A stretch of 64,000 bases of DNA from NCBI RefSeq assembly GCF_963676685.1, contig NC_092346.1:106268001-106332000 (forward strand). The letters are read 5' to 3'. Position numbers and translations under genes: made by a program. Under the pieces are notes generated by a model. It did not search any database. It was not told where the DNA came from and saw only the letters and a program-made list of their open reading frames with translations. How positions within the stretch are numbered: the stretch's first letter is position 1; each line of letters begins with the position of its first letter. The stretch is from Mytilus edulis (lineage: Eukaryota). This document shows positions 4,160 to 60,100 of the stretch, one piece after another.

Positions 4160-4287
4160 CTAATGTTGAATTCATCATCCGATTTATCATTGTGGTGTTA
4201 AATTCTGGACATTTCCACTTCTCAAAGTCTGTCAGAGCCAACATAGGAACTATGTAAGCAAAAGCTGGACACTGGACTATTGGTAGT
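4160..4287 (-). CDS. SLC23 exon (LPIVQCPAFAYIVPMLAL...KWKCP...)
   Basis: RLPIVQ-x-x-x-FA motif and W-x-CP; ttttag acceptor. The donor G|gtagtt at 4159 is uncertain; an alternative AG|gtaaaa lies near 4080. The gene continues off the left edge. Confidence 0.85.
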
Positions 4288-5361
4288 CTAAAATACACAT
4301 GCCTTATTAATTATTATTACTGGACACTGGACTATTGGTAGTCTGAAATGCACATGTCTTATTAATGAGTATTACTGGACACTGGACTATTGGTAGTCTG
4401 AAATACACATGCCTTATTAATTAGTATTACTGGACACTGGACTATTGGTAGTCTGGAATAAACATGTCTTATTAATTAGTATTACTGGACACTGGACTAT
4501 TGGTAGTCTGAAATACACATGCCTTATTAATTATTATTACTGGACACTGGACTATTGGTAGTCTGAAATACACATGCCTTATTAATTATTATTACTGGAC
4601 ACTGGACTATTGGTAGTCTGAAATAAACATGTCTTATTAATTAGTATTACTGGACACTGGACTATTGGTAGTCTGAAATACACATGCCTTATTAATTATT
4701 ATTACTGGACACTGGACTATTGGTAGTCTGAAATACACACGCCTTATTAATTATTATTACTGCACACTGGACTATTGGTAGTCTGAAATACACATGCCTT
4801 ATTAATTATTATTACTGGACACTGGACTATTGGTAGTCTGAAATACACATGCCTTATTAATTATTATTACTGGACACTGGACTATTGGTAGTCTGAAATA
4901 AACATGTCTTATTAATTAGTATTACTGGACACTGGACTATTGGAAGTCTGAAATACACATGCCTTATTAAATTATTATTACTGGACACTGGACTATTACT
5001 AGTCTGAAATACACATGCCTTATTAATTACTGGACACTGGACTATTGGTAGTCTGAAATACACATGCCTTATTAATTATTATTACTGGACACTGGACTAT
5101 TGGTAGTCTGAAATACACATGCCTTATTAATTATTATTACTGGACACTGGACTGTTGGTAGTCTGAAATACACATGCTTTATTAATTATTATTACTGGAC
5201 ACTGGACTATTGGTAGTCAGAAATACACATGCCTTATTAATTATTATTACTGGACACTGGACTATTGGTAGTCTGAAATGCACATGCCTTATTAATTATT
5301 ATTACTGGACACTGGACTATTGGTAGTCTGAAATACACATGCCTTATTAATTATTATTACT
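4266..5361 (-). repeat. 55-bp minisatellite, about 20 copies: 3' splice site + first 22 nt of SLC23 exon
   Basis: Minus-strand unit gtaataataattaataaggcatgtgtatttcag|ACTACCAATAGTCCAGTGTCCA. Confidence 0.95.
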
Positions 5362-6179
5362 GTATACTCTATATTAGTCTGATGTTATACAAAAATAAAG
5401 CATGGGAAAGGGACAGTGTTTGTATTTATCATGCAACAGACAGGGAACAATACCATTATTCAATTGTTGGCAGTTATATCACTCCAATTGACTTAATTTA
5501 TTAACAGGCCTTGGTCATTTTACACATCACAAAGCCAACCTGATATAAAGAAGATAGATAGCAATTCACGTCTCATGATAAATGATCTTAGTGTCAAATA
5601 ATTATGGTTTTAACTTATAGTATATTTAATTATCAATAATTTTGTGTATTTTCAGATTATCCATATATGAGCTGTGTAGGCAAAAAGTTTCAAATTTTGC
5701 ATTGCCTTTTTTCCAAGTAATCATTGTTACCGGAAACAACTCGTGTATCTAGTTTTCAACATTTCAAGTCATATAGGTCTAGAAAGGTGGCACCAGGTAA
5801 TTATTAAACTATGCCGTTATCGATAATTTATTTTTCATCTTATCAAGGCCTTTTTCTATAAGCTAAACATAAAAACACCGTAATTCCAAAACAATGAAAT
5901 TCTGAAAATGATTTGATTGCCACGAGTCATACCCGTTTAACAGTTGTAGTGACTAACTTCTCGAACTAGGGCTTTTTATGACTAGTTAACATGGTATCAT
6001 GTTTTATGTACGTCAATGTATTTTCCTTGTCTCTTGTAATGTACATTATTACCAACATGGCGTTGTCTGTTTATTTTCGATTTTTTGACTGTCCCTCGGG
6101 TATCGTTCGTCCCTCTTTTATAGAGTAGTTGATAAATCATGTTACAAATGAGGATAACAATTGATCTTTATATATAAAA

Positions 6180-6355
6180 AAGAAGATGTGGTTTGATTGC
6201 CAATGGGACAACTATCCAAAAGAGACCAAAATGACACAGACATTAACAATTATAGGTCACCGTACGGCCTTCAACAATGAGCAAAGCCCATACCGCATAG
6301 TCAACTATAAAAGGCCCCGATATGACAATGTAAAACAACTCAAACGAGAAAACTA
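6180..6355 (+). mobile_element. Abundant SINE-like repeat (other copies near 17500-17705, 26155-26290, 29600-29805 and 48380-48690)
   Basis: Shared aagatgtggt...gccaatgagacaactctc and aggtcaccgtacggccttcaac motifs in both orientations. Confidence 0.6.
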
Positions 6356-6991
6356 ATGTCTTAATGAATGAAAACGAATAATCATTCATAAAATGTACAA
6401 ACTTATCTTTGTTTATCGGAGTGGATAAGCATCCTAACAGTATTCAACAACATAGAGACATTCGCTTGTATTGGGTGGGAAAGAGAAAAGTTGCAGACTA
6501 GGTTTTTTTTTATTAATGTTTCATATAATGTCTACACAGTCTTTCAACTTCAATCTTTTTAAAATAATACAACCTAACAAGTATGATAAAAGTAATAGTA
6601 GTAAATAGTCATACATTGATTTAACTGAAACAAATCCGGGTCACAAACCAACCGAGGGAAACACATCAAGTGTAAGAGGAAAACAACGGAACTAAAGTAA
6701 CACTAAACTGCAACAAAAACAAACTCCAATAAACATAGAAACGGACTATTTGATAGCAACTGTTATATTTCTGAATTGGTACAGGACATTGAAAGAAAAT
6801 GGTTGGTAGAACCTGGTTTTATGGCTAGCCACCCCTCCCGTCGATATGGCAATGTCAAAAATACCGCTAAAATGACAACTTCAGTAAGCCAACTGTTTGT
6901 TTCATTCCTGTAACTTATGAAAGAAATTACATTTGAACTACAGAGAATATAATGGTAATTGGTTATTGTGTGGTGGATTATAATTGTTTAC

Positions 6992-7149
6992 CTGACTCCT
7001 ATAAATGTCTGTATAACGGTACATATCCCACAGGCAAACAGCATGTTACCCAGAATCATTGATGTCACCTCTACGTCACCTTTGGCACAAATTATAGTTG
7101 CCACAAGAACAGGGGTGGCAAGGTTAGAACTCAATAACATCAGGTAATG
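6992..7149 (-). CDS. SLC23 exon (HYLMLLSSNLATPVLVATIICA...CGICTVIQTFIGV-R)
   Basis: Completes QHYL; the G-I-x-T-x-I-Q-T-x-x-G-x-R-L-P motif spans the next junction; 158 nt, phase 2. Confidence 0.9.
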
Positions 7150-7658
7150 CTACAAACAGTTTAATATTTAATAATCAAATGGTTCATGAAGTAACGCCGG
7201 ACCAACGGACAATTTCTATAATGAATAGAATAACAATTAGGAAAACAAATCCGTAGATAAAAAAAACGTACAGTAGTATATGCTGTTCGAAATTCATAAA
7301 TCGATTGAAAAAAAACAAATCCGGGTTACAAACTAAAACTGTGGGAAACACATCAAATATAAGAGGAGAACTACGACACAACAGAAACATAACTTTAAAA
7401 TGTTACACACACAGAAACGAACTATAATATAACAATGGCCATTTTCCTGACTTGGTACAGGACATTTAAAACAAAATGGTTGGTTGAACCTGGTTTTGTG
7501 ACATGCCAAACCTCCCCCGCTTGTATGGCAATGTAAAATGTAACATTAAAATGACAACATTACATGACAGGACTACAATACAAATAAATGGAACAACATA
7601 TAGGACAGAGAAACACACGAATAATAGCTAACAAAAGGTATCAGGTTTAAAATTTAAT

Positions 7659-7702
7659 ACGTCAGACACGCGTTTCGTCCACACAAGACCAACCAGTGAC
7701 GC
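7659..7702 (-). ncRNA. Degenerate hammerhead copy (core mutated to CUGGUUG)
   Basis: Homologous to 3138-3181; lies inside a repeat at about 7240-7705. Confidence 0.6.
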
Positions 7703-7869
7703 TCAATGAAAAAGTATATAAAACCAATTTCATTTTGTATCATGTAGTTGTGTGGAAAAAGAGTTCTTCTTATTTTATTTTAATCATTTGTTGTAGATTC
7801 TTTTCATATCAATCAAGAACCTTAAGGTAAATGAATTAATGACACAGAATGCTATAATTACAGTAACAA

Positions 7870-8862
7870 ATCCACGTTGGAGAGTCCACATTACCTGTCA
7901 GGTTGGGGTACTACAGTTTACATTACCTATACAGCTTGAAGTACTGACGTGATTCACAGTTGAGAGTCCACATTACCTGTAAAGCTAGTATTACTGTAGT
8001 AATCCGTGGTAGGCATACCACGTCACCTGTAAAGCTAGTAGTACTGTAGTAATCCGTGGTAGGCAGACCATATTACATGTAAAGCTTGTATTACTGTAGT
8101 AATTCGTGGAAGGCAGACCAAATTACCTGTAAAGCTAGTAGTACTGTAGTAATCCGTGGTAGGCAGACCATATTACATATAAAGCTTGAAGTAATGTAGT
8201 AATTCGCGATGGGGTGTCCATATTACATGTAAAGCTTGAAGTACTGAAGTGATCCGCGGTGGTGTGTCCATATTACATGCAAAGCTTGAAGTACTGAAGT
8301 GATCCGTGGTGGGGTGTTCATATTACATGTATAGCATGAGGTACTGTAGTAATCCACGGTGGGGTGTTCATATTACATGTAAAGCTTGAAATACTGTAAT
8401 AATCCCCGGTGGGGGTCCATATTATATGTAAAGTTTGAATTACTGTAGTGATCCGCGATGGGGTGTCCATATTACCTGTAAAGCTTGAAGTACTGTAGGA
8501 ATCCACGATGGGGTGTCCATATTACATGTGAAGCTTGAAGTACTGTAGTGAACCACGATGGGGAGTCTGCATTACCCGTAAAGCTAGAAGTACTGTAGCG
8601 ATTCACAGTAGATAGTCTGCATTACCTGTAGAACTGGTAGTACTGTAGTTATATACGATAGAGATTCCACATTACCAATAGAACTAGTAGTATGGTAGCT
8701 ATCCACAGAATGGAGTCAACATTACCTATAAAACTGGTAGTATGGTAGTTATCCATGGTAGGGAGAACACATAACCTTGAGAACTAGTAGTATTTTAGAT
8801 TTACACGATAAGGAGTCAACATTACCTGTACAGCTAGTAGTATAGTAGTTATCCACGGTGGG
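7870..8862 (-). repeat. Diverged ~50-bp minisatellite, about 20 copies: SLC23 exon end + donor
   Basis: Units resemble CCCACCGTGGATAACTACTATACTACTAGCTGTACAG|gtaatgttgac. Confidence 0.88.
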
Positions 8863-8912
8863 TTATCATCAACCTTATACTGTAAACCACGCAGTACTCC
8901 AGATGTTTTCAT
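8826..8912 (-). CDS. SLC23 family nucleobase/ascorbate transporter, probable first coding exon (MKTSGVLRGLQYKVDDNPPWITTILLAVQ)
   Basis: Y-x-V-D-D-x-P-P-W motif, and the Q of the NAT-family QH motif; tttag acceptor; CAG|gtaatg donor. Confidence 0.85.
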
Positions 8913-9331: not shown

Positions 9332-12300
9332 TTTTTTTTTTTTTTTTTTAAATTGATACTTGTTTATTCCAAATATTTCCTGTTTACAATTTCCTCAGTT
9401 GCCCAGGATGCAAACTGTGGATTCCCGTTTACATTTAAGCCAACTGTCCGGGAAGCAGGAGGTTGAAAAATGTGCACTATATTATCCGAAAAAAATAGTA
9501 TACATGTAATAATACTTATATTCTTTTATATGACAATGAGTGAAAAAGGAATATCTTTATAGAATGTACTACTAGTGGTAAATAATATAACATTATAAAA
9601 ACATAAACGAGTGCACCTATAAACCAGATTCACATAATATTTTAACATAATCGAGTGCATCTTTAAACCATGGATTACCGTAATCAATATAAATTAAAGA
9701 GATATAAAAAAAACAGACAACATGACTGCTATCTCCTGCAAGGTATGTACTTATAGTATGAAATTAATTAATGTGTTTATTTTCTCTTTGTCTAATGTAT
9801 TAATTGATAAGTAACAGGGTACAGATTTCAGATGTGTTACCATGTATGATTTCCAAAGATTTAAAATATATGTCGAGGACATTTTTATCCCATCATATTT
9901 AATTTTGTTTCTTATTTTCCACACGGACCATTTTGTCAAAATAAAAAATAGATTTACAAGTAAATTTTGGTTCGAGTGACCACTGCTATCTCCCAAAAGC
10001 ATAAACTGTTTTAAATTATCATCATCTAATTGAATATTCCATAATGTAAAAATATCTTTGATTTTACTAATGATTAATTTTGTTGTATTGCAATCGAAAA
10101 ATAAATGTTGCAGATTTTCAGTATTATTTACAGTTTGGCAAATATGACATTTTCCGTTTGACAATTGCATTTTTTTAAGTCTACTTTCCGTATATATGAT
10201 ATTGTGAATGCATTTCCATTGAAATTCTTTTATTTTATTGGTGATTTTAACTTTTTTCAAATTGCCCCATACTATTTTCCAATTAATTTCGTGGCCATAA
10301 AATTCTTGCCATTTAAGTTGACATTTTGGATATATATTCTTATTAATCATGTCTCGAATATATTTTAGTTTTAATTCTTTTGGTTTGATTGTTTTCCCAG
10401 ATCTGTCTAATATAACCATTTCATTAGAAAGTTTCATTTCTATGTTTGGTTTCTTATTAATTTCATTATCAATTTCTAATATTTGTAAGAAGTCAATTGG
10501 TATTGCACTTTTAATTCTTGAAAATTCCGATATGCAGTTTCTTTTATCTACAAGTTTTTCAAATATAGAACAACAACTGTTAAATTTGTTGGTTTCTACA
10601 TTCCATATGTCTTTGATATATTTCATGTTACTATTTAGAAAGGAAGAAAAAAACAATGGATTATTTTGAAATGAAATTTTTGAATTACCAAATAGTCTCA
10701 TATTAAGTACCTCGTTCTTAGTTTTGGGATTATCTCCAATTTTTAGAAAATTAGACCATGTAAAAATCATTTTCTGATAAAATAAAGGAATATTTTTAAT
10801 ATTTAGTCCTTTAATATTTGAACATTTACATAAAAAATACTGATCATTATACTTGTTGTCAAAGTGTCGAAGCCAATACTTGCCAATCGCATTCCAGCTT
10901 TCTAATGGTTCATGGAGAATGCGATAAAGAGACTTTATTTGTTTACTTCTAATGAATAAGTCTATACTAATCATGCCCATTCCGCCCTTTGTTATATCAA
11001 GACAACAAACCTGTCTTTCTATTTGGTTAACTTTCCCATCCCATATAAAATTCCAAATAATATTGTTTATTTCTTTTGAATATTTTTCAAGAATTCCCCG
11101 CATTTCAATTTCATAACTACACATGGGCAATATGAAATTTTTTACAATTAAGGTTTTACCACTAAATGAAAGTTTCCTGCTTTTCCAAACGTGGACACAG
11201 TTTTTAATCTTTTCTATTATACTTTGCCATATAGCATCATTATCAATTTCATATCCGTGATTTACTCCGAGGGTTTTTACACTACCTGTGATCCATTTAA
11301 TTTTATTAAATTTTAGTTTTTTCCTTTTAAGAGATCCTATAAGTAAACCTTTGGTTTTATCAAAATTAATTTTAGATCCCGAAGCTTTTTCGTATAGCGT
11401 TAGGACATCAAAAGATTTTTCTACTGATTTCTCATTTTTGTTAAAAAGCTGAGTGTCATCAGCAAACATGCATAATTTAGTTTCTATACTTTTACCCCCC
11501 TCACCAGGTATTTGAATCCCTTCAATTTCCTTGTTACCTCGTATTGCACATGCCATTGGTTCCGCTTGCAAAATATATATAAGGGGTGCTATTGGACAGC
11601 CCTGTCTGGCCGAACGTGTTATCGAAAAATATTTTGAAACATGTCCATTTGTTTTTATACAAGTAATAGCATCATAGAGTAACATTTTTATCCATTGTCT
11701 AAATTTCCCCCCAAAATTAAACTTTTCTAATACAAAATCCACCCATTCCCATTCAACTCTATCAAAAGCTTTTTGTTGATCAAGAAATATTATTATTCCA
11801 TCTTCATCTTCGTTGTCAATATAGTCTATTATATCTTGAATTAATCTGTTAGCATCACTAATGTTTCTTCCTTTTACAAACCCTTTTTGATCTGAATGTA
11901 TTATTTTTGGTAAGACTTTTTTCAGTCTCATTGCAAGAAGTTTTGCTATGATTTTGTAATCGGTGTTAAGTAATGTAAGAGGTCTCCAATTTTTAATATT
12001 TTCCCTTTCACCACCCTTATGTAATAACGTAAGAACCCCTTTATGTTGTGATTTACTTAAGACATTTTTATCAAATATTTCTTGAAGGAGTGTGAAAAAA
12101 TCATTTTTTATTATATCCCAATACAGTATGTAAAATTCAGATATAATGCCATCCTCACCTGGTGATTTGTTAGTCTTGAGATCTTTGAGCACTTTTTCTA
12201 ATTCTTCCATATTTATATTACTATCAAGCATCTCCTTATCGTCCGAACTTACCTTATTTTCAATAAATTGGCAAAGCTTTTCACCGCTATTTTTGTCCCA

Positions 12301-14257
12301 CCCTTCAGCCGTAAAAAGTGTGGAATAGAAATTTACTTGTTCTTTTAATATCGAATCAATATCATATTTATACTCACCCGTTTTTGTTTTTATACGATTC
12401 CATAACTTGTTTTGGCCATTTTTCTTTTCTAAACTAAAAAAATATTTCGTTGATTTTTCACCTTCTTCTGACCATTTAATTTTTGCCCTAATTTTCGCAG
12501 ATTCTGTAAAATTTGTATAAATATCCTTAATTTCGCTTTCAATTTCGGTTATTCTAGAATTGGTGATACTTGTTTTTTCCTCTACTAATTTTAATCCTTC
12601 GAGTTGTTTTTCAAGTTTTTTAATGTGATTGTTATTATATACTCGATTTAGTGTTTTACTTACATCAATTGTTAGAAATTTTATTTTACTTTTGGTAATA
12701 TCCCACCATTCTTGTATATCATTATATTTGTCTTTACTATTTTTCCATCCTTCCCAAAAGATTTTAAAAGCATTTGAAAACTGCTCAGATTTAATTGTAT
12801 TTAAGTTCATAATCCACATACCCGGCCCTCTTTCTATATCATCTAACTTAATTTTTGATGTAACTATTTCGTGATCACTAAATGGGAAATGAGATATACG
12901 AGTGTTAAATATTTTACTATTCAAAGATTTGCTGCAGAAAATAAAATCTATACGAGACTTAGAGTTTCCTCTCTGAAACGTATAACGTTTTGTATCTGGA
13001 AATCGAGATCTCCATATATCATCTAATTCATATCTCAATAAAAGATTTTTTAATTCAATTGTACCGACGTCATTATTTTGATGTGATGGCATTCTGTCTA
13101 TTTTTTTGTCTAAAGTACAATTAAAGTCTCCTAATAATACGGTGTAGTGTTCAACGCTATCATCGTCATACACTTTATTTAAGTTGCGCAAATTTTCGTA
13201 AAAAGTCTTTCTATCGGAACCGTTGTTCGGTGTATATACATTAATAATATGATATACAGCATTATCTTTTTTTATGTCACACATTTGACATCTTCCGTTT
13301 TCATCGTGATTTATAAAAGTTACATTTTCGGAAAAAATCTTTTGCAAAAGGAATCCCACTCCCCTTGAATCAGAAGTTCCGCAATTCCAAACTGATTCCC
13401 CTCCCCCAAATTTTTTCCAGTCATTACCCCAGTTATCAATATCAGATTTTGAACAATGTGTTTCTTGAAGACAAATAATATCGAACTTTTTTAAAACTAA
13501 CCAATTAAAAATCATATCTCGTTTTTTATTGTTTCGTAAACCATTTACGTTTATAGAAGCAATTGACAAAGACATATTAAGATCGAATAGTTTTTTGTTT
13601 CTTTCTTTCGTCATTTAAATGTTTCACTTGAATGCTTTGAACCTGATTATATCTATTTGGAACAATAAACTTAACGGATCGGTTATGTGTATACCTTTGT
13701 GTAAACAAATCAGGTAAAACTTTAATCATAAAGCGTCGTTTAAAAACCGTATAAGGTGTAATAAACAGATACTCATTCATGTTCTCATCATATAACAATA
13801 CTAAGCGTCGTTTAAAAACCGTAAAAGGTATAATAAACAGATACTTATTCATCTTCTCAATATTTAACAATACAGTTTGGTATAGCTTAGCAATGTTTGC
13901 ACTTTTTGCAATATATACATATAGGCATATAAACGAATTATTTTTAAATAACATATACATACGAAAAATATGTTTAAAAAAGTGGACATAATATTTACAG
14001 TGATACATTTGTGTTTTTTGTTTGTTTTTGTTTGTTTTTTTTTTTTTAAATATTTGTTTTTTAACATTAAAATCAGATTAAGTAGTCAGAGTGTTTATTC
14101 ACATGGGTTTAATCATGATCTATTCCTGTCTCTTTTCTTGATACTTTGGATGTCCGGTCTGCAGATGTTGGAGTAGTTTTGTCACTTCTGTTGCGTTTTC
14201 GATCAATCGGAGTGTTTGATACGACGACGTTTGTGTTTGGGCTATTTAGAAACAGAA
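9332..14257 (-). mobile_element. L1/Tx1-clade non-LTR retrotransposon, 5'-truncated within ORF1, ORF2 intact
   Basis: TSD tgcagcagaagtt at 9319-9331 and 14258-14270; poly(A) tail (T run to about 9349) after AATAAA; ORF1 C-terminal remnant at 14109-14257. Confidence 0.93.
9751..13614 (-). CDS. LINE ORF2: APE endonuclease + reverse transcriptase + C-terminal CCHC zinc knuckle
   Basis: SINVNG, CLQETH, LGDFN, SRIDF and SDH (APE); KSPGEDG, NWRPLTLLN, KAFDRV, RQGCP and FADD (RT); CHIC...HLFFDC. Likely start is MSLSIASINVNG at about 13578. Confidence 0.95.
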   Translation of the reverse strand: MTKERNKKLFDLNMSLSIASINVNGLRNNKKRDMIFNWLVLKKFDIICLQETHCSKSDIDNWGNDWKKFGGGESVWNCGTSDSRGVGFLLQKIFSENVTFINHDENGRCQMCDIKKDNAVYHIINVYTPNNGSDRKTFYENLRNLNKVYDDDSVEHYTVLLGDFNCTLDKKIDRMPSHQNNDVGTIELKNLLLRYELDDIWRSRFPDTKRYTFQRGNSKSRIDFIFCSKSLNSKIFNTRISHFPFSDHEIVTSKIKLDDIERGPGMWIMNLNTIKSEQFSNAFKIFWEGWKNSKDKYNDIQEWWDITKSKIKFLTIDVSKTLNRVYNNNHIKKLEKQLEGLKLVEEKTSITNSRITEIESEIKDIYTNFTESAKIRAKIKWSEEGEKSTKYFFSLEKKNGQNKLWNRIKTKTGEYKYDIDSILKEQVNFYSTLFTAEGWDKNSGEKLCQFIENKVSSDDKEMLDSNINMEELEKVLKDLKTNKSPGEDGIISEFYILYWDIIKNDFFTLLQEIFDKNVLSKSQHKGVLTLLHKGGERENIKNWRPLTLLNTDYKIIAKLLAMRLKKVLPKIIHSDQKGFVKGRNISDANRLIQDIIDYIDNEDEDGIIIFLDQQKAFDRVEWEWVDFVLEKFNFGGKFRQWIKMLLYDAITCIKTNGHVSKYFSITRSARQGCPIAPLIYILQAEPMACAIRGNKEIEGIQIPGEGGKSIETKLCMFADDTQLFNKNEKSVEKSFDVLTLYEKASGSKINFDKTKGLLIGSLKRKKLKFNKIKWITGSVKTLGVNHGYEIDNDAIWQSIIEKIKNCVHVWKSRKLSFSGKTLIVKNFILPMCSYEIEMRGILEKYSKEINNIIWNFIWDGKVNQIERQVCCLDITKGGMGMISIDLFIRSKQIKSLYRILHEPLESWNAIGKYWLRHFDNKYNDQYFLCKCSNIKGLNIKNIPLFYQKMIFTWSNFLKIGDNPKTKNEVLNMRLFGNSKISFQNNPLFFSSFLNSNMKYIKDIWNVETNKFNSCCSIFEKLVDKRNCISEFSRIKSAIPIDFLQILEIDNEINKKPNIEMKLSNEMVILDRSGKTIKPKELKLKYIRDMINKNIYPKCQLKWQEFYGHEINWKIVWGNLKKVKITNKIKEFQWKCIHNIIYTESRLKKMQLSNGKCHICQTVNNTENLQHLFFDCNTTKLIISKIKDIFTLWNIQLDDDNLKQFMLLGDSSGHSNQNLLVNLFFILTKWSVWKIRNKIKYDGIKMSSTYILNLWKSYMVTHLKSVPCYLSINTLDKEKINTLINFIL

Positions 14258-14385
14258 TGCAGCAGAAGTTAAATATTAGAATTTTAACATAAAAATAAAA
14301 TTCGGATATGTGTATGTTAAAATGTGAAACTACAAAAACTAAGTAACACCAACCATGAAGCAAATGCAAAATAGTATAGTTAATC

Positions 14386-15565
14386 AACTTTTGTTATATA
14401 CCAGATATGTTACCTATACCGCTGTTATATACCAGATATGTTACCTATACCGCTGTTATATACCAGATATGTTACCTATACCGTTGAATACTGAAATCTA
14501 CGAATATTTAACTTTTGTTATATACCAGATATGTTACCTATACCGTTGAATACTGAAATCTCCGAATATTTAACTTTTGTTATATACCAGATATGTTACC
14601 TATACCGTTGAATACTGAAATCTCCGAATATTTAACTTTTGTTATATACCAGATATGTTACCTATACCGTTGAATACTGAAATCTCCGAATATTTAACTT
14701 TTGTTATATACCAGATATGTTACCTATACCGTTGAATACTGAAATCTCCGAATATTTAACTTTTGTTATATACCAGATATGTTACTTATACCGTTGAATA
14801 CTGAAATCTCCGAATATTCAACTTTTGTTATATACCAGATATGTTACCTATACCGTTGAATACTGAAATCTCCGAATATTTAACTTTTGTTATATACCAG
14901 ATATGTTACCTATACCGCTGAATACTGAAATCTCCGAATATTTAACTTTTGTTATATACCAGATATGTTACCTATACCGTTCAATACTGAAACCTCCGAA
15001 TATTTAACTTTTGTTATATACCAGATATGTTACCTATACCGCTGAATACTGAAATCTCCGAATATTTAACTTTTGTTATATACCAGATATGTTACCTATA
15101 CCGTTCAATACTGAAACCTCCGAATATTTAACTTTTGTTATATACCAGATATGTTACCTATACCGCTGAATACTGAAACCTCCGAATATTTAACTTTTGT
15201 TATATACCAGATATGTTACCTATACCGCTGAATACTGAAATCTCCGAATATTTAACTTTTGTTATATACCAGATATGTTACCTATACCGTGGAATACTGA
15301 AACCTCCGAATATTTAACTTTTGTTATATACCAGATATGTTACCTATACCGCTGAATACTGAAACCTCCGAATATTTAACTTTTGTTATATACCAGATAT
15401 GTTACCTATACCGCTGAATACTGAAACCTCCGAATATTTAACTTTTGTTATATACCAGATATGTTACCTATACCGTGGAATACTGAAACCTCCGAATATT
15501 TAACTTTTGTTATATACCAGATATGTTACCTATACCGTTCAATACTGAAACCTCCGAATATTTAA
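14386..15565 (-). repeat. 62-bp minisatellite, about 18 copies plus two 32-bp sub-units, containing a donor-like site
   Basis: Unit aaatattcggagRtttcagtattcaacggtatag|gtaacatatctggtatataacaaaagtt. Confidence 0.93.
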
Positions 15566-19644: not shown

Positions 19645-19690
19645 GCGTCACCAGTAAGTCTTGTGTGGACAAAATGCACTACTGGCGAAT
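19645..19690 (+). ncRNA. Highly degenerate hammerhead copy in a related repeat (about 19440-19910)
   Basis: gcgtcaccagtaagtcttgtgtggacaaaatgcactactggcg aligns to the consensus; core destroyed. Confidence 0.45.
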
Positions 19691-20689: not shown

Positions 20690-20790
20690 ACGACTACAAC
20701 AAGACATGTATGGTCAGTATGTTTATTATCATCAGAATGGCTGGCGTGAAAGACTACAACAAGACATGTATGGTCAGTATGTTTATTATC
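20690..20790 (-). terminator. Putative IPO5 poly(A) site, present twice in tandem
   Basis: Minus strand AATAAA-catactgaccataCA-tgtcttgttgtagt at 20787-20782 and 20727-20722, at the end of a TE-poor, UTR-like 3.3 kb stretch. Confidence 0.5.
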
Positions 20791-23700: not shown

Positions 23701-24048
23701 TGCTTATCAAAAATAAATCTGACATCAAATATCATCAAAAAAATGAAAATTTATCAAATTCTAGACTGTTGAGACTTATTCAAACATTCTTCTATGTATT
23801 ACAAAGGTTTTCATTCTCAGAATCTAAAAAATCAAATGTACCAATAAACACAAATTTTGTGTTGTCATGGATAATTGTGAAATCTAAAACAAAATATTAA
23901 GCCTCAATTGTAAGGTATCTCCTTGACTGTGTTTTATGATTATGTTGTTTTATGGTGGTATTATGTCCACGACTGTTGTTCTATAATGTTATATCTGGAC
24001 TGTTGGTGACTGTTGTTCTATAATGTTATATCTGGACTGTTGGTAGTA

Positions 24049-24132
24049 TTAGCTACTGAGAGCTTGATGTAATGTTTGTTGCTGTTCTGCAGACAAAAGG
24101 GGGATACAGGCCTGGAATACTGCTGGATTTTG
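24049..24132 (-). CDS. IPO5: IPO5 exon 26, terminal coding part ([27 protein letters not shown])
   Basis: tttgcag acceptor, phase 0, TAA stop. Confidence 0.9.
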   Translation of the reverse strand, partial: QNPAVFQACIPLLSAEQQQTLHQALSS

Positions 24133-48100: not shown

Positions 48101-51100
48101 TCTATTTTAATGGGTACTAATGTTCCTTGATTTTTAATTTTGTAGTTTTGTCGAAAAAATGCATACAATCCTTTAAAAAAATTGTTAATTGTTGAACATT
48201 TAATTCTGTGATTAATCTGTATCCACAATATCCCCGAAAATTTGTATCCAAGGAATAATAATGTATCCACAGTATATAAAATCGAAAATCAAGCCTTTTT
48301 ATTTTATGGAATTCTTTCATTCCTTCTATGACTCATATTTATGTTGTGATGTTACACTATTAGGGTAAAGGTTTGGTACCATTAAAATGTTTAAACCTGC
48401 TGCAATTGTTTGTACCTGTCCTAAGTCAGGAATCTGATGTTCAGTAGTTGTCATTTGTTGATGTGGTTCTCAACTGTTTCTTGTTTCTCTTTTTTTATAT
48501 AGATTAGACTGTTGGTTTTCCCATTTGAAAGGTTTTACACAAGTTAATTTTTAGGGCCCTTTATAGCTTGCTGTTCGGTGTGAGCCAAGAATCTTTGTTG
48601 AAGACCGTACTTTGACCTATAAGGGTTTACTTTTATTGAGTGTGACTTAGATGGAGAGTTGTCTCATTTGCACTAATTCCACATCTTCTCAGATATCTAT
48701 TAGAAACAAGTTTTAAATGTCTTCATACAAGGTTAAAACAAATATAATTGTAGGGTCTGGAATGAATATCTTACCCTGTTATGATATTTCTTTTGAAATA
48801 AGGGACCAAAATCTCTACACAGCTGACCAATAGCATTACATCCAGCATATCTAACTCTTGGGTGCTGCAAGAAAAAACAACAATTAACTTTTCAATTGAC
48901 AGAACTTAATTGCATTGTAGCTTTTTTTTTATCATTGTTAGTTAACTCATGGAAGTAATATTTAGAAGGAATAACAACGACTAATTAGCATGTATTTATA
49001 GCATGCTGAGCTCTGTACTAAAGTCATACGATTTCATCCAATTATAGTCTCAGCGGTAAGACGCCTTTGGTTACTATCTGCGTTACCGCGGTTGTAAAAG
49101 GCATCTGGAATTTCTTATCAGTCACATGGTTTTATCGAGTCCGGTAATTATAACGCACCTGTGGGAAATCCCTTGTTTATTAATAACAAGGTAGCGCTGT
49201 ATCACATAGAATATCTACCTTTAGAAAGAAATCGAATGGTGAAAAAAACTTGAAAAAATGGACGAGAATTGTTCAAACTACAGCAGTTTAACATGGAAAA
49301 TTGTATTTAATTTAGCATATTTTTGCTTTTTACCGTTTGTTTTAAACTGTTCTAAAAGTATTTTCCGGTTAAAAGCGGATCCCGAGTTAAACAGTTAAAT
49401 ACCGATGAATCGATCAGGTTTCACATGATGTTTAACAAAATAATGTAGGCAAATGTAGGCATAGATTTTTTTACTGTTGAAATGTGCAAAGTTTATCGAG
49501 ATTGAATGAAATAATATTTACTTTCAAGTATTCTAAATTTATGTATATGTCATAAATGTCATTGATTGCATTATTGAAACTGGACAACTAAAACGGGGAT
49601 AATATTTTCGTAAATATATATTTAAAAAGTGTTAATTGTGGAATGCTTGTACTAATATAATAAGCTATACAGCAAAAAATATAACAAACCGACGAAATGG
49701 GCTTGCATCTATCTGTCTTACGGTAAATTCATTTTTACACAAATTAGTTTATGTATCAAGAACTTAAATTGAAGGATAGAACCGTTTAGAATTGTTAATA
49801 ATTTAATTGACTATAAATACACGAGAGATTTAGATTTTTAGTATTTAATAAAGGGTGTCCAAACATATTTTTTGTACAGTCATCTTCTTAACTTTATACG
49901 GAAATGGTTTTTTAATTGTCTGTAAATTTTAAAATTGAAATGACACAACTTTGTTCTCCAATTTCGTATGTGATAGCTGTCGGTTTTAACTATTAAGTTC
50001 AAACTAACCAAAAATAGGGAAAAATTGGACTAAAATAAAAATTGAACGAATGACTCTTTTCAGCAGCGTACATCAACGGAATGTAACGAATGGACTATTC
50101 GGGTTACTTCGCATGTATATTCGACAAAAACTTGTCTGTTCGTAGTTCTCCGTGAACACGAAAATGACCGATAAGTGTCAGTGATTTGATCGATCACATG
50201 CGGAGAATAAACTTCCATGCCAGATATTGAACCAATTAACGAGTTATTGAAAGATGGGCGGTAACGCAGATGAAACCTTTGAAGTGACGACGATGTTATT
50301 CCTTCCAATATTACTTCCATGGTTAACTCCACAAAAAATAGAAAATTTCAGCATATTCAGACTGTTAGAGGAAAACTTTTTCACAGACAAGATTTTTACA
50401 ATTATACAAAATATGACAAATTACCTTTGTTCTAAATTTTAGTTATTAACTTTTTTTTCCAAAGAAAATTGCTTATAAAAACAGAATCCCTTTACTTGAA
50501 ATGTATGAGTGTAATAAAAGTTTGTTTCACACATATAACTTACTGGATCTTTAAGGAATGGTAAAACAGCATCCAGTATATTATTAAGCATTCCTTCCAT
50601 CTGCTGGTGACAACCTTCAGCACAGGCAGAAATAGCCATCAATGCAGCATGTCTATATCTCCAGTCACCTGTCAAAATAAAGTAAATCTATCAGTCTCCG
50701 ATCACATGTCAAAATTAACATAAAACCTATGGAATTCCAGTCACATATTAAAATTAACATAAAACCTGTGGGATTCCTGTCAAAAATCTGTGGTATGTTT
50801 GCTAGGATATGTGGTAATTTACCATTCTGTAAAATCTGTGGTATGTTTGCTAGAATATGTGGTAACTTACCATTCTGTAAAATCTGTGGTATGTTTGCTA
50901 GGATATTTGGTAACTTACTATTCTGTAACATCTGTGGTATGTTTGCTAGGATATTTGGCAGCCTAGCTTTCACATTGTAAACTTACCATTCTGTAACATC
51001 TGTGGTATGTTTGCTAGGATATGTGGAAGCATCGTTTTGCCACCTAAGGCACAAGCCAGTCTATCTAGGGCACTTTCAGCTGCTATACTATTGCTATAAA

Positions 51101-54100
51101 CAGAAAAACATCTTATTAGAGAAAGGAGACAAACAATTACCACAAAGTTATAGCACTTATTTATTCAAACTTACAGCTTATTAAGAACAAATACCATTTT
51201 TACAACATCTTGACCTCTCTGTATGCAATCCACTTCCGCATAGTCACACAATATTTCAAATTGAACAAAAAAGTTCAATGTTTTAAATACTTCAATGGCT
51301 ATTTTTTTTCAATGAAACGCATGTTCATTTATCCTTTAAAAAATCATTCCTGTTATTCAAGTCTTCAAAAATGAACTGCTAATGAATTCACCTACAGCAT
51401 TTTCGTAAGCTGTTATCTTAGCCATGACATCTCCCATTAGAAACTCTATAATTACATATCTAGTGTCCTCTAACCTTCCAGTGTCAGTCTTACCCACTTA
51501 CCTTTCAGTATCTTCTTCTTCTGGTTCATCTTGAATGGACCAATCTTCTTCCTCTTCTAGATCTACCATCAATGCTAGAACTTGTGGTACTGTAATATAG
51601 TATTATAGTAAGTTGTGGGGATAAACAAAACACAATTCTCAATAGCTTACATTTGACACAATACTACAGTGAATAGAACAAGACTCCCACATAGATGTGC
51701 ATACAGAGGTTATACTTTAATAAAATTTATATTTCATATTGAAGATAAATTTTTTAACTTCTGATGACTGGTATATGAACTTTAAAACTTTAAATGTCCA
51801 CATTACCACCAGAACTTTCCTAGCAGAAGCAAAAAACATACATTTGAAAAAATCTTAAGTCTTTCACTGCATACATTAAAACAAAAACAACAAAATTTGT
51901 AATAACACTTGGTTGATATTCTTCACAAAAACTTTAATGTTTATTTTAAAGTGGGCCAAATTATATGGCTATTTCTACCTACCAGAAAGCACTATTGTAT
52001 TTATGTGTCATATTTGTTGAATCTAGACATATATTTTTTTTACAACTGCCAGATTTTGTTTTAAGTTTAAAATTAAGTGCTTTTTTGTTTGTTTGTAAAG
52101 AAAAATTAAGTGCTTTTTTGTTTGTTTGTAAAGAAAAAAGTATAATTACAATGATGGGCACAATTCCAATTGACAATCTATAAATTAAGTTCTTTTTTTC
52201 TAATGTCCTGATTTTGGACCATCATTTACCTAGCAGAGGCATGTACTTCCCAAACTTTCTAACCATGGCAGGAGCTGTTTCAGATAACGTTACAATAGCC
52301 TCCATTCCTAACTGTCTCATACTGTCAGACAAATTGGCATCAGAAATAACCTGTGTAAAATTATCAATATACTGATTTAAAATTATAATTTCTCTAAAAT
52401 AATCTAATTAAACTGTCCCAGATTAGTGGTATGGCTGTGCACCAACTGTCATGTTTAATCCAGCCATATTCTGTCTCGAGACTGTTACTTAGTGTCCGGT
52501 TACTTAGTGTCAGTGGTTATAGTTTTGAGACGGTTACTTAGTGTCAGTGGTTATAGTTTTGAGACGGTTACTTAGTGTCAGTGGTTATAGTTTTGAGACG
52601 GTTACTTAGTGTCAGTGGTTATAGTTTTGAGACGGTTACTTAGTGTCAGTGGTTATAGTTTTGAGACGGTTACTTAGTGTCAGTAGTTATAGTTTTGAGA
52701 CGGTTACTTAGTGTCAGTGGTTATAGTTTTGAGACGGTTACTTAGTGTCAGTGGTTATAGTTTTGAGACGGTTACTTAGTGTCAGTGGTTATAGTTTTGA
52801 GACGGTTACTTAGTGTCAGTGGTTATAGTTTTGAGACGGTTACTTAGTGTCAGTGGTTATAGTTTAGAGACTGTTACTTAGTGTCAGTGGTTATAGTTTT
52901 GAGACGGTTACTTAGTGTCAGTGGTTATAGTTTTGAGACAGTTACTTAGTGTCAGTGGTTATAGTTTTGAGACGGTTACTTAGTGTCAGTGGTTATAGTT
53001 TTGAGACAGTTACTTAGTGTCAGTGGTTATAGTTTTGAGACGGTTACTTAGTGTCAGTGGTTATAGTTTTGAGACGGTTACTTAGTGTCAGTGGTTATAG
53101 TTTTGAGACGGTTACTTAGTGTCAGTGGTTATAGTTTTGAGACTGTTACTTAGTGTCAGTGGTTATAGTTTTTTGCACACAGTATATATCATATTTGTTT
53201 TTAGTTAATTGTTTTGAACATAAATTAGGCCATCAGTGTTTTTGTTTGAAGTATGTTACATTTGCAATTTGAAGCCTTTATAGCTTGCTGCTGGTTTAGA
53301 GTTTTGCTCATTTTTGAAAGCTGCACAGTTTTTACATCTTTGTCATTTGGTATCTTGACAATCCTACAAAAATCTGTTTATTTCTATATAGATATTAATT
53401 TGAACATGTTAGTTGGATATTCTACTAATATCAGTCTAGTACATGTACCTCCTAATATTCAGATACAGTAAAATACATGACTAAATGTCTTAAAGTATAG
53501 ACAATAACATCTAGGAAGGCATGATTTCATATCAGCTGGTTAAGAACTTTTGTGCATCATATTTTAATGTTTTTCTTCCTTTGGTGTTGATTGTAGAGAG
53601 TTTCTAATACATCTATAAATAATACTTCTTGCTTGTTCTATTGTACCCTGTTTTTGTTCATGACCATATTGACTAGAGAGGTCTTCAGTTTTTGATTTGT
53701 GTAATAAGTTGCTGTCTAATTGACATAAATGCAGTCTTCAAAACAACAGTATAGGTCATTGTTTGTATTTTAGTAATTCATGAAAATTAAAGGTCACTAT
53801 TAAGATATATTTAATTACCTTCAGACAAAATGGTATAATATTATCCATTTGAGGTCTGAGGAATTTTGGAACATTCTCTGCCAATTCTATCAAACATTTC
53901 ATCAAACTGTCATCATCAGCTGCCAAACTTTCATTCATACCCTGAAATTATCATTAATTCATGGAAATGTTGACCCTTGTACAAACACCATTACAATTGT
54001 CTCAGTTGTGAAGGGGATCACTGCAGGGCAATTGGATTTTTGATATCTGATCCACAACTTCAAATGAAAGTCTGTTTCTAGGTTTTGTTAAGTCCTGCAC

Positions 54101-57100
54101 ATCAAAAAAAAAATATTTTCTACCACAACACATAGCAGTCTCAGGATAAACATATTTTTTTGGGGAATAGATATCAATTAGTACATCGAACATGTCGAAG
54201 GGGATATGTCAAATGGAATTATGTGAGCTTAAATGTGAGGAGAAGTATGTTCAGATTTATAAAAGGGTAGCCAATATTTCAGTACTCAAATTGTACTCAA
54301 GTACTCAGCCTTCCGAGCAAGTACTTGAGTACTCCTTGCAATCCCTACTTTAAAGTGATGGAAAAGATGATTATTTGTATCGTTAGCTACAAGGAAGGCC
54401 ATGGTTATCAACTGACCTGTATCATTGGAGGCAATAGATCTTTAAAGTGATGTAACAAATGATTATTTTTATCATTGGCTACAAGGAAGGCTGTTGAGGC
54501 TTTGATGGCTTCAAACCAAACTTGTGGGTTATCCCTGTCAGCTAAACATCTTGTTAACATCTGTTTAATAACATCCATATAGTGGCTCTGCTGTTTACCA
54601 AATATTCCAGGAACATTTCTGTAATATATATATTACATTTAATGGAAATAAACATCTTCTATATAAATGTTCTCTATATAACTAAAAGCTTGCTACATTA
54701 CAATTTGTCATTTAAACATTTAACAGGGAAGGTAAATGTATGAAAATGAATTGCAACATGCTTGTTTGAAAATAGCAACCACCTTTTTTTTTAACTTTTG
54801 TTATATCAGTTGATCATATTTTAAAGTGGATTATAAATGATTTTATACACGTTTTTACTTTTGTGATATTTCAAAAAACTTCATACAAATAACAATTGCA
54901 GATATGTCAATGCCATCTTGTAAACTGTTTGAATTTGAAGCACTAATTCATCGACATAAATATTACAATTCATCTATTTATTGCGTATTTGAACTTCAGA
55001 ATATTTGTAATGAATCTGTTTTCCATACAAGATTCACCAACAGTCATTTGCATTAAAACAACTTCCTAATGTATTACTTCCTGTTGTTCTCAATCAAACA
55101 CACCCATGGAAACAATGAAGAATCAAACATCATTTGCTAAATCATTTATTCTGCAAAAATATTTGTATTATCCTGTTACCATCAACATGATCAACCAGCA
55201 CTGGAGTTAAATTGGCTCAGGATAAGAAATAACTTTTCAATGGACACATTTTACCAAGTTTCAAGTCAATGGATTTTTCCAGAGAGTCCCTGCATGTTAA
55301 GCACTAGACGAAAACTTTTCTCAAGTTTTAAGGGCAAAAAGGAGGTTGACTTCTATGCATGGCTGTAATAAACATATATTTAGACAGATTTTTGTTGTTG
55401 TTTTTCACTTACTTGAAAATATGAAGAGCACTTTCCCTTAAACCTGAATCTGGAGAACTTGCACTTTCAAACATAAACTTCAGGACTTCTGGCCAGTTCA
55501 TGTTTTCTTCATCATCTACAAGAGAGATAGAGAGATAAAATGATTAAATTACTAATGATTCCATTGTGTTTGTATTGCTCCCATTCATTTGATGCACAAG
55601 CCTGACTGATGATAGGACTAACAAATTAAATAAGTAGTATATTGTGTTTAATGATGAAAAATCACAACTGATGTGAACTTGTCATAAATAATTAGGGTAG
55701 AGAAACATGTCATGAATAATTGACGGAGAGAAATCTACATTTAACAGCAGTTGATGCCATAATGTATACATGTTTAAAGACTGATTTTTGAATTATAATC
55801 GACACTTTATTTTCCATTCTAGTTATAATGAAAGCATGATAGAAATTGAAGTAATTAATATGAGCTGCGTCAGATAGAAATTTATATTATGCACACATAT
55901 AGATGATAGATGATAGAGACTTTGATTGATATAATTTTTAGAATGGTAAAAATGACTCCACCAAAATTCATACTTGATCTGTGTTTTGTGGTAATAAGCA
56001 TTGTGTATGAGTTCCATAATATTTGGTTGAAGCAAACTAAAGTTAGAGAACGGAAACGAAAAATTAAGAATTTTTTCAATTTGTTAAGGGGCCAGGCATA
56101 ACTCTAGAACGGTTATAGTGGTCGACGCCACCAAAATTCAAACTTGATCTGTGTTTAATGGTAATAAGCATTGTGTATAAGTTTCATAGCATTTGGTTGA
56201 GGCAAACTAAAGTCAGAGAACCTAAACAAACAATGGGACATATATATAGACAGACAAGAGTAAAAAATAATGCCCTCTCCCCTATGGCGGGGGCATAAAA
56301 ATGCACAAACAAAGTTAACTTAACTAAGCCTGCCAGTTGCTCTTTAAATAGAACATGATTGAAAGGGACGAAAGATGATAAATGCATCATTCAATAATAT
56401 AACAAGAGGCTGTCACAACGACAGCAAACCGGATTTATTAACATTTATTTGTGTCCTGGCAATATCACAAGAACCATAACTGATGAATGCTGAAAGTGAA
56501 ATCGTCAATATCAAATTTGACCTCCATTTTGTAGTCAGTATCAACATATTAAAATTTGAAAAGCTTAGATTGAATGGTTCATTAGTAAATGCAACAACGT
56601 GAATGGAAACACCATTTTACGATCTTTCAAGAACCATAACTCCTGAACGGTGAAAGTCAAAATTGTCATTATTGAACTTGACCTCTATTTTGTCATCAGT
56701 AACAACATATAAAAATTTCAAAAGCTTTGGTTGAATGGTTTATGAGAAAATGCACGGATACGACTGGAAACACCATTTTTCAATCTTTCAAGAACCATAA
56801 CTCCTGAACGGTAAAAGTCAAAATCGTCATTATTGAACTTGACCTCCATTTTGTCATCAGTAACAATATCTTAAAATTTTAAAAGCTTTGGTTGAACAGT
56901 TCATGCGTAAATGCACGGACACGACTGGAAACTCCATTTTTCAAACTTTCAAGAACCATAACTCCTGAACCGTAAAAGTCAAAATCGTCATTATTGAACT
57001 TGACCTCCATTTTGTCATCGGTAACAACATATTAAAATTTGGGAAGCTTTGGAAGAACAGTTCATGCGTAAATGCACGGACTTGACTGGAAACTCCATTT

Positions 57101-60100
57101 TTCAATCTTTCAAGAACCATAACTCCTGAACGGTAAAAGTCAAAATCGCCATTATTGAACTTGACCTTCATTTAGTTGTCAGTAACAACATATTAAAATT
57201 TTAAAAGCTTTGGTTGAATGGTTCATGAGTTAATGCACGGACAACATTTGATTGCCGCCCGCCCAATCATATTTCTAGCCAATTCTGCTGTTGCATCACA
57301 CACCTTTCGTCTAACAGGGGGTTAAACTTACCGATCATATTTCTCTCCAATTTTGCTGTTGCATCACACACCTTTCGTCTGACAGGGGGAGATAACCTTT
57401 ACAGTAGAAACTTACCAATCATATTTCTCGCCAATTCTGCTGTTGCATCACACACCTTTCGTCTGACAGGGGGAGATAACCTTTACAGTAGAAACTTACC
57501 AATCATATTTCTCGCCAATTCTGCTGTTGCATCACACACCTTCCGTCTGACAGGGGGAGTTAACTCTTCTGTTATAGCAGACATTAATTTTTCTTTCACA
57601 GCTGCTTGAAGTTCTGGTGACAGTTTTGGCCATACTTCTTCAAATTCATTTGTAAATAATCTTCTTAATAAAACAGATGACAGTGTTCTTATCTGTAAAA
57701 GAAATTATAATTATATACTCAAACAAGAATGTGTCCACGGATGCCCCACTCGCACTATCATTTTCTATGTTCAGTGGATCGTGAAATTGGGGTCAAAATT
57801 ATAATTTGGAATTATAATTAGAAAGATCACATCATAGGGAACATGTGTACTAAGTTTCAAGTTGATGTAACTTTAACTTCATCAAAAACTACCTTGACCA
57901 AAAACTTTAACCTGGACTTCGCACTATCATTTTCTATGTTCAGTTGACCATGAAATTGGGGTCAAAACTATAATTTGGCATTAAAATTAGAAAGATCATA
58001 TCATGGGGAACATGTGTACTAAGTTTCAAGTTGATTGGACTTCAACTTCTTCAAAAACTACCTTGACCAAAAACTTTAACCTGCAGCCAACGGACGGACG
58101 GACGCACAGACGGACGCACAGACGAACAGAGGCACAGACCAGAAAACATAATGCCCCTCTACTATCGTAGGTGGGGCATAAAAAAGCAAAGTCAATTTTA
58201 TTTTTCTCACATGCTTGTTTATCATGCATGTCAGTCTGTCTATTAAGGAAAACCTTGTAAATATCTCTTATAAAATGAAAATTTATGTAAGGAGATGTTG
58301 TGTTAACATGTCAATTAGTTTCCTGAACTAACAATTTTGAACAACAGCACAACCCCTTATCACCAAAAGATATGTACTCGCCTCCATCGATATATTCCTA
58401 CATACTGGACTAACATTGGTAATTAGGTAGAGCCAGCTGGTAGCTTGTCTTATGTACTCACCTCTATAGATATGTTACTATTGGACATAGACTGGACTAA
58501 CATTGGTAATTTTGTAGGGCCCGGTATCTTTTCATATAATCCCTACAAAACAATAAAACAAATTTAAATATAAAGTGTTGTAAAATAATTAATCTACACT
58601 GTTGAACATTGAGGTGCTATATGTCTTGTTTCCGATTTTTTTCTTCTAGCAACTTGTATAGAAGTTTCTACAAATGAAATATCATAATGGACCTGTTATA
58701 TCAGACCCTATATCCAGGGTTCGACACTAACGCTAGCCCGCTAGCCAGAGACTAGTAACTTTAGTGTCGGGCAAGTAAATGTCCATGGCGCGGTAGCCCG
58801 AGGGGCTAGTAAATTTATTTGTCATTGAACATCAATCTGTTGTACTTTCGGCAAAGTACAGTCCAAACGCCGGTCATATCTGACAACTTCTTCGAATATT
58901 GTCTACACTGGTTCCACGACCTCTTTATTTACATACAGATACAGATACTGGAGGGTAAAATTTCTACCATAAACCAGTCGCTATATACAGTCAACTCGGC
59001 CTAAGATTACTCAGCCCATAAAGTAAGAATGCACCACGTTTCAAGATAACCCGTTTTGAAATAAACATTAATTATACTGCATATACATTTTGGTTTTATT
59101 ATATTTTATTATTAATCACATCAGAGATCCTGATAAATAGTGTGCGTAGTTTAGCCTTATCTATTACATAGTCGTCGCGTAAATAGTTTAATTTGGAAAT
59201 GTCCTTTTAGTAACGATAATCATCATGGATCTTTAGTTAAAAACAGGCTCTTGCAGAAAAAGGAAAAGCGATACTGAAGGTAAAGAAGGAATAATTCTAG
59301 TAAACTAGTTTTTTTGGGGGAACAGAGTCTGAGTATTGCATATAACTTCATGAGAACAATCCAAAAACGATAAGTAGACTGACAAATCAAGTACTGGTCT
59401 TCGGAAGGGGGCAGTCCTGTCTGCGTATTCATTTCTCCATTTCACAAACTTTTGACAAATCAAGTACTGGGCAACGCAAGGGGGCAGTCCTATCTGCGTA
59501 TTCATTTCATGAACTTTAATCTTTCTCTATACAGATAAATAAAATATAAATAATATGAAACATGAATGCATAGATTAGTTTTTATCCAGGCCTAAAATAA
59601 AATTTCATTTGTTTGGCATTGCCGCCCGACCCACTGAAAAACTTGCCGCCCAAATAATTTTATTTGCGTTTCAGAAATTTATTTTTTTTTATTTAAAAAA
59701 AAATCGAAATTGTGCCGGAATTTGATCGTATCCGCCGAGTTTGTTCCTGGCTTTACTTATTTCAAATCACGATCTTAAAAGCGCTTGCCTTACACAGTAT
59801 TGGGAGCAAACATTTAAATGACATGGCATAGAAAAAGTTTGCCAAAAGTAATGTCAAGGAGGCCGCAGGGGAAAGCATCAATGCATTGGTTAAGGGAGAT
59901 GGATTTTGTCAAAAATCAAATGTTCAGCTATTCTTTGAAAGAAACGTTCTGAGAGACCTTGTAGAGGACTCAAGTTTTATCTTTTGTAAAGGCTACAAGC
60001 AGAAATAGATGATTTCTGCTTGACTTTGTTGCTTCATGAGATAGAAGTTTTTCACCGGGACATCACAGAACAAATATGCGTGGCTCTTACATTTGTTGAA

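Follow-up and report, generated by a model that had tools for sequence, protein, structure and literature searches.

In a window of 64,000 nucleotides from Mytilus edulis (C3:106,268,001-106,332,000 of a 1.37-Gb assembly; 32% G+C, zero N), by which we mean the whole stretch of DNA that was analysed, nine or ten short tandem arrays in two adjacent genes copy those genes' own exon-intron junctions. One gene encodes a protein like importin-5 (karyopherin beta-3) and is here called IPO5; the other is the 5' part of an SLC23 gene for an ascorbate/nucleobase transporter. Seven of the repeats carry the end of an exon together with its 5' splice site into the intron (first coding exon of SLC23; exons 2, 3, 5, 9, 16, and 25 of IPO5). 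In two or three others it is a 3' splice site that has been copied, in the upstream direction (IPO5 exon 10, the SLC23 exon that starts at 4288, and, with weak support, IPO5 exon 7). We think it rather likely, with a probability of roughly 0.6, that these arrays are minisatellites of the "mirage" type known from amphioxus, which would have arisen by duplication in situ and unequal exchange and would have been filtered so that one intact exon with the outermost splice site survives. As such, they extend a known oddity to a new phylum, at unusual density, and are not a new kind of element.

Anatomy of the junction arrays

The window had been described in a first-pass annotation as holding about 11 duplications that copy RNA-processing boundaries. 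Direct reading and alignment bore out eight of its items, namely the SLC23 acceptor, the SLC23 donor, and the donors or donor-proximal segment of IPO5 exons 2, 3, 5, 9, 16, and 25, whereas three items, at 14386, just past a stop codon, and at the putative poly(A) site, were not supported (see below). The acceptor of IPO5 exon 10 and, weakly, that of exon 7 were not on that list and are added here. Coordinates are collected in Table 1.

Table 1. Positions of the junction arrays, other local repeats, and host genes within the window
Feature	Position	Strand	Description
IPO5 exon 25 donor array	24448-26000	minus	50 bp x 31, copies 95-100% identical; donor after 25956
IPO5 exon 16 donor array	41279-41486	minus	52 bp x 4.0, 100% identical (very recent); donor after 41438
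IPO5 exon 9 donor array	50773-51038	minus	authentic and 4 further copies, 90-97% identical; donor after 50987
IPO5 exon 5 segment copy	54348-54491	minus	52-nt exon-internal source at 54440-54491, copy at 54348-54399, 87-88% identical
IPO5 exon 3 donor array	57263-57578	minus	84 bp, authentic and 3 further copies, 93-97% identical; donor after 57500
IPO5 exon 2 donor duplication	58371-58530	minus	one decayed extra copy, 88% identical with indels; donor after 58462
SLC23 first coding exon donor array	7882-8862	minus	50 bp x ~15-19, 73-88% identical (old); donor after 8826, reaching about 7870-7880
SLC23 acceptor array	4265-5368	minus	55 bp x 20, copies 89-98% identical; Tandem Repeats Finder (TRF) and copy table
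IPO5 exon 10 acceptor array	50661-50782	minus	39 bp, 2 clear copies and a diverged authentic copy
Candidate IPO5 exon 7 acceptor duplication	52345-52386	minus	21-22 bp, two copies, 80% identical (weak)
62 bp x 19 array	14386-15565		strand not assigned; no neighbouring exon shown; left out of the junction-array count
37 bp x 2 perfect duplication	23971-24044	minus	3' untranslated region (UTR), from 6 nt past the stop codon
60 bp x 2.1 repeat	20692-20811	minus	unit holds AATAAA on the gene strand; putative poly(A) site
IPO5-like gene (importin-5 / karyopherin beta-3)	63806 to stop at 24050	minus	~25 mapped coding exons; tblastn and splice-site mapping
SLC23 gene (ascorbate/nucleobase transporter), 5' part	4160-8912	minus	coding exons 8912-8826, ~7146-6995, 4288-4160

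The largest of the donor arrays follows IPO5 exon 25. Its unit joins the last 45 nt of the exon to the first 5 to 6 nt of the intron, and its 31.06 units (1,553 nt/50; 31.1 according to TRF) occupy about 82% of intron 25. The exact donor context is kept in 24 of the 30 decoy donors of this intron, and in the remaining six GT has become AT. These six share one change at spaced positions, an arrangement that fits a single mutation spread by multi-unit exchange. At exon 16, where the array is 4.0 units long, the unit consists of the last 49 exon nt and 3 to 4 intron nt; a GTAAGA donor is created by the joint between copies, GTACAG is retained in the last copy, and all three decoys have an intact consensus. 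The array at exon 9 grew with a unit of about 68 bp in its first round and one of 48 bp in the next (40 exon and 8 intron letters). The unit at exon 3 comprises about 76 exon nt and 8 intron nt, its last copy being cut off by the start of a 161-bp satellite, and that at exon 2 (about 85 bp) comprises about 70 exon nt and 11 to 15 intron nt, with GT changed to GC in the donor of the copy. In the old donor array of SLC23, the last 36 exon nt and 14 intron nt form the unit, and the donor copies have drifted to CATGTAAT. Exon 5 differs in kind: its copy begins 17 to 18 nt beyond the donor, and because the 40 nt between source and copy were not duplicated, we regard this event as a templated insertion and not as a plain tandem duplication. 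Each of the seven donor cases has an in-frame stop 6 to 39 nt beyond the exon end, ahead of the first decoy, so that use of a decoy would yield a truncated product.

On the acceptor side, the SLC23 array is about 20 units long (20.1 according to TRF). Each unit takes in the final 31 to 32 nt of the intron and the opening 23 to 24 nt of the exon. The exon at 4288 is joined to the last copy alone and is preceded by some 19 decoy acceptors. This array had been recognized before, with the productive site placed at a CAG at 4265. Since the alignment to SVCT1 has coding sequence already from "(R)LPIVQ", the acceptor in use is instead the TAG at 4289-4291, and it follows from an exon start at 4288 that the unit includes 23 to 24 exon letters. 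At IPO5 exon 10 the unit combines a 31-nt intron tail with an 8-nt exon head, and the decoys are without AG; the alignment of copy to authentic sequence was matched by 1 of 2000 shuffles. This acceptor array directly adjoins the donor copies of exon 9. Intron 9 (50669-50986; 318 nt) is made almost entirely of about four donor-junction and about three acceptor-junction copies, and therefore has a unique core of only about 45 to 50 nt. The weak repeat at exon 7 gives two in-frame AG sites 21 nt apart.

Unit sequences are unrelated from array to array, yet all arrays have the same orientation as their source exon and are contiguous and in register with it. The arrays of IPO5 exon 25, IPO5 exon 16, and the SLC23 acceptor measure whole multiples of their units. 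The rule that donor copies extend downstream and acceptor copies upstream, leaving one intact exon, held at every surviving event, and in each exon-overlapping case it is the outermost splice site that the intact exon retains.

The ends of the exons in both genes were set by protein alignment, one exon at a time. For IPO5, a translated exon (46709-46942, minus strand) matched full-length importins in a library of 1.84 billion proteins; the gene model was made by tblastn with the full-length relatives P0032 and P0020, the latter carrying the name karyopherin (importin) beta 3, carp, and splice sites were then mapped per exon. This mapping did not locate a small exon (residues 811-826) between 37561 and 31779, and the open reading frame (ORF) of exon 25 returned zero matches when used as a homologue query. 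The SLC23 exons, once translated, can be aligned with residues 58-110 and 107-139 of solved SVCT1 chains (8jew/7ytw).

Local origin, age, and known counterparts

Three arrays (IPO5 exon 25, SLC23 acceptor, and SLC23 donor) were searched against the 1.37-Gb genome, and each matched its own locus only. Within these three unique arrays the self-match offsets are 200 to 275 bp, which indicates growth in multi-unit blocks; the SLC23 acceptor array displays a higher-order period of 275 bp. Identity between copies ranges from 100% down to about 75% across the arrays. We therefore agree with the earlier suggestion of a recurrent process of varied age, in which the arrays represent repeated, independent events.

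The introns themselves appear to be older than the arrays. The end of exon 3 falls on the same residue in 11 relatives, and the other array-bearing introns break conserved alignments at ordinary positions. A comparison of orthologous introns, which had been proposed as a check, was achieved for the exon 3 region: a first metagenome scan for orthologous exon 3 loci found zero, and a second recovered this region from four other animals, in which the introns are about 160 to 1200 nt long and hold no such array. Given the conserved end of exon 3 and the short, array-free introns elsewhere, we conclude that arrays enlarged old introns and did not make new ones.

Arrays over splice junctions have been described in amphioxus and in human F7, CBS, IFI6, LMNB2, and PDGF, and the phenomenon as such is not new (PMC3087553, PMC1557585). 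The amphioxus "mirage" minisatellites occur in Adh3, the globin genes BflGb6 and BflGb9, troponin C, and PGBD5; regular splicing is reported to be undisturbed by them, their length is polymorphic, and the mechanism of their origin is called unclear by the authors (PMC3087553, PMC3902484). Like them, the Mytilus arrays are boundary-spanning tandem repeats that lie at 5' and 3' boundaries and reiterate AG or GT within the intron; the amphioxus units measure from tens of bp to about 160 bp and are 81 to 100% identical. The Mytilus units run head to tail and are 39 to 92 bp long (against about 10 to 160 bp for mirages), in 2 to 31 copies. The terminal monomer spans the authentic exon-intron boundary and belongs to an exon placed by protein alignment, and splice-site sequence recurs in the intron, as in the 24 exact decoy donors of intron 25, the 3 of intron 16, and the roughly 19 acceptors of SLC23. 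Unlike the amphioxus cases, those described here are from another phylum, number nine or ten in two adjacent genes, reach 31 copies, and have donor units that are almost all exon. A mollusc case of boundary-spanning minisatellites was not found in the literature searched.

The human boundary-spanning minisatellites include a 37-bp repeat in IVS7 of F7 and others in IFI6/6-16, IVS13 of CBS, LMNB2, and PDGF (PMC1557585). As in Mytilus, the intron repeats the authentic donor as a series of identical pseudo-donors; of the identical donors in F7, only the one farthest upstream is used, which explains why arrays of this type are tolerated (PMC1557585). The human arrays differ in being isolated, one per gene, and the F7 unit is mostly intron. 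A further counterpart is the Rogers model, under which introns are gained through tandem duplication of an exon segment bearing AGGT (PMC3265369, PMC4974935). It shares with the Mytilus arrays a tandem duplication that adds splice signals and turns duplicated DNA into intron. The difference is that pre-existing introns at conserved positions were enlarged here and none was newly made: intron gain of the Rogers type implies an intron absent from relatives, with both of its splice sites derived from the duplicated segment, and the exon 3/intron 3 position is common to 11 of them. We therefore rejected this model for the arrays.

If such arrays prove to be genome-wide, they would provide natural experiments by the hundred on how splice sites are chosen, with as many as 30 to 40 identical decoys behind a single used site. 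They would also offer a measurable route for the growth of short introns and a way to test the germ-line fragility of splice junctions, a question left open by the amphioxus literature. On a practical level, gene prediction and read mapping will go astray at exon ends because of these boundary arrays.

Placement of the arrays and competing explanations

We infer the following course of events. Segments of about 40 to 90 bp straddling a splice junction would be duplicated in place, likely by replication slippage, template switching, or break-repair synthesis, and several of the resulting arrays would then lengthen through slippage or unequal exchange. This process would also generate the many purely intronic arrays of this repeat-prone genome, which arise in the same way as the junction arrays, from unique DNA or from transposon fragments. 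Duplications touching an exon would persist only when they run through the splice site, such that the reading frame stays whole. The authentic site would thereby stay outermost, as the first donor or the last acceptor, and the extra sites would be intronic decoys, presumably silent because the first donor is the one chosen, as in F7 (PMC1557585). Of the two interpretations offered by the first-pass annotation, microduplication throughout the genome filtered by selection thus fits best, while the branch that invoked rolling-circle reverse transcription was rejected (see below).

Two observations weigh against this reading. The first is the number of junctions hit. Arrays cover 19.4% of the window, compared with 6.8% of a random 200-kb sample (C1, 30.0-30.2 Mb). 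We calculated chance expectations by counting each array once, collapsing arrays to one unit, and assuming uniform seeding over a sequence with 54 junctions. The probability that a junction falls within a founding unit is then 0.016 to 0.032, or 0.85 to 1.7 expected hits among the 54 junctions. Between 6 (strict count) and 8 were seen, an excess of about 3.5 to 9 fold (P = 0.008 to 3e-6), the size of which depends on the window having been chosen post hoc as striking and on the denominator, which in turn hinges on the age of transposon insertions (the intron self-search map scored 39 of 38,943 candidates). When the calculation is restricted to IPO5, P lies between 0.15 and 1.4e-4 according to whether transposon-borne arrays are counted. 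A strong donor motif is present in 5 of 25 units, where 0.7 would be expected. The random 200-kb sample, which has low power, contained no junction array, and its three donor-like arrays were not at ORFs. Junctions are thus over-represented under uniform seeding in this window, as had been claimed, although the excess is smaller than implied by the earlier description of junctions as a "tiny share of the sequence", given that much of the present intron length consists of the arrays themselves and of transposons.

The second observation is the phase of the units. Of the 48 to 92 letters that make up the unit, only 3 to 17 are intronic in each of the seven donor cases, a bias with P of about 1e-4 if the junction could lie anywhere in the unit, and a simple selective filter does not predict donor units so rich in exon. 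In all three acceptor cases, the exon part is the smaller part of the unit. Read along the transcript, the 3' boundary of every unit falls 3 to 24 nt past the junction. Base composition was ruled out as the cause of the exon-rich units, since the G+C content of non-junction units is 0.329 and that of the background is 0.32. The phase bias hints at a mutational bias linked to junctions.

The alternative that best survives makes this bias the cause. A break or stalled fork a few letters past the splice site, tied to transcription or splicing, would set the 3' boundary of the unit; a paused polymerase, a bound U1 particle, or the edge of an R-loop might serve as the stall site, with the upstream 40 to 90 nt being copied again. 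Such a bias would account for units that reach less far beyond the junction than ahead of it (all 7 donor and all 3 acceptor arrays), for the insertion at +17/18 after exon 5, and for junction hits above uniform seeding. However, few cases are available and they were recognized as a pattern only post hoc, and because both genes are on one strand, the direction of transcription is inseparable from that of the chromosome. The phase of the human F7 unit is the reverse of that of the Mytilus donor units, with 4 exon and 33 intron letters (PMC1557585). Nor do intronic arrays cluster beside junctions: one array end lies within 25 nt of a junction, where about 1.3 would be expected by a hand estimate. 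Counts of three spaced donor octamers in the whole genome, compared with the reversed octamer, likewise gave no consistent donor excess. For AGGTAAGT there were 644 matches versus 857, with 14 versus 6 distinct arrays on contig 1, and for AGGTGAGT 529 versus 111, counts that are noisy and dominated by a few long arrays. We regard a bias tied to transcription or splicing as unlikely.

A bolder form of this idea would make the splice junctions of this genome mutational hot spots for tandem duplication, at which a coupled break or fork stall 3 to 24 nt downstream fixes the edge of the unit, and would make junction copies a major, directional source of intron growth. Intron 9, a candidate for growth from about 45 to 50 nt to 318 nt, and intron 25, 82% of which is junction copies, would be instances of such growth. 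We hold this form to be doubtful.

It is also conceivable that the decoys were selected, either as extra binding sites for U1 or acceptor factors that guard AT-rich introns from premature polyadenylation, or as elements that tune splicing or allow recursive removal of the intron. The intact consensus in most decoys of intron 25 and in all those of intron 16 would suit such a role. Old arrays, however, lose their sites, as in the drifted SLC23 donors, the GC of the exon 2 copy, and the exon 10 copies that have lost AG, and it is mainly this loss that makes a selected function improbable. Moreover, units are unrelated in sequence among arrays, any use of a decoy leads to a stop, and the four other species have no array in their orthologous exon 3 region.

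That the arrays are an artefact of assembly, or that ordinary intronic repeats simply happen to overlap junctions, seems very improbable to us. Repeats are dense here, and one to two overlaps are expected by chance, but the excess within the window has a P of 0.008 or less. As for the assembly, the copies display ordered variants and higher-order periods, the decayed copies at exons 2 and 5 and in SLC23 cannot be assembler stutter, the contigs are chromosome-sized, and in an independent assembly (P0153) exon 3 ends alike and the intron begins with identical letters.

Origin through RNA, in which small RNA circles would undergo rolling-circle reverse transcription or resident retroelements would retro-insert partial transcripts, can be dismissed almost entirely: although an intact long interspersed nuclear element (LINE) ORF and a near-threshold hammerhead in the window imply that reverse transcriptase is around, rolling-circle reverse transcription is contradicted by units of unspliced exon and intron, by nine or ten arrays that each lie exactly at their own source, in register with it and sharing its orientation, and by the uniqueness of the three arrays tested, and neither poly(A) tails nor target duplications are present. 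The arrays are not retrozyme products either, there being no self-cleaving ribozyme in the units (no Rfam ribozyme family matches any of them, and the sole hammerhead, at 3138-3181, is outside the arrays) and no dispersed copies of the three arrays tested.

Repeats away from demonstrated junctions

Three items of the first-pass annotation were not supported as processing boundaries. At 14386, where a tentative UTR donor had been proposed, no exon is shown alongside the array, and the best donor-like score is 5.1, below that of 20 of 22 real donors. The duplication after the IPO5 stop codon, a 37-bp repeat, overlaps no boundary and simply lies in the 3' UTR. The putative poly(A) site probably refers to the 60-bp repeat at 20692-20811, in whose unit an AATAAA occurs on the gene strand.

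Several repeats in the window belong to dispersed families. At 43785-44417, a dispersed ~290-bp element is represented by one copy, 75 to 82% identical to dozens of loci; a 43-bp x 9 array (43938-44323) represents local internal amplification of this one copy, and a 47-bp x 11 array begins in the 3' end of the element. Arrays of a 169-bp satellite at 37886-38624, 38697-39183, and 57750-58139 end in an (ACGG/ACAG)n microsatellite. Since this family recurs in the random contig 1 sample, it is dispersed, and it is probably carried by a transposon. Another dispersed element, spanning about 4 kb (32468-36427), is 92 to 96% identical to at least 7 loci. Nested within it is a high-copy element of 830 bp (32860-33680), 97 to 98% identical to more than 30 loci, with a fragment of an ORF resembling reverse transcriptase. 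Two IPO5 introns have in common a stretch of about 112 bp, 91% identical (40428-40539 and 43623-43735), that adjoins a 39-bp x 18 array.

The intact LINE ORF mentioned above (1287 amino acids; 9754-13614, minus strand) has endonuclease, reverse transcriptase, and zf-RVT domains and lies between IPO5 and SLC23 or in a 5' intron of SLC23. The type I hammerhead ribozyme is a full-length match on the minus strand (32.5 bits versus a gathering score of 34; E 2e-5) and sits in an SLC23 intron, outside every array. Finally, the window opens with a long direct repeat, marked by two identical open frames of 65 codons at 307-501 and 1990-2184 (minus strand), 1683 bp apart.

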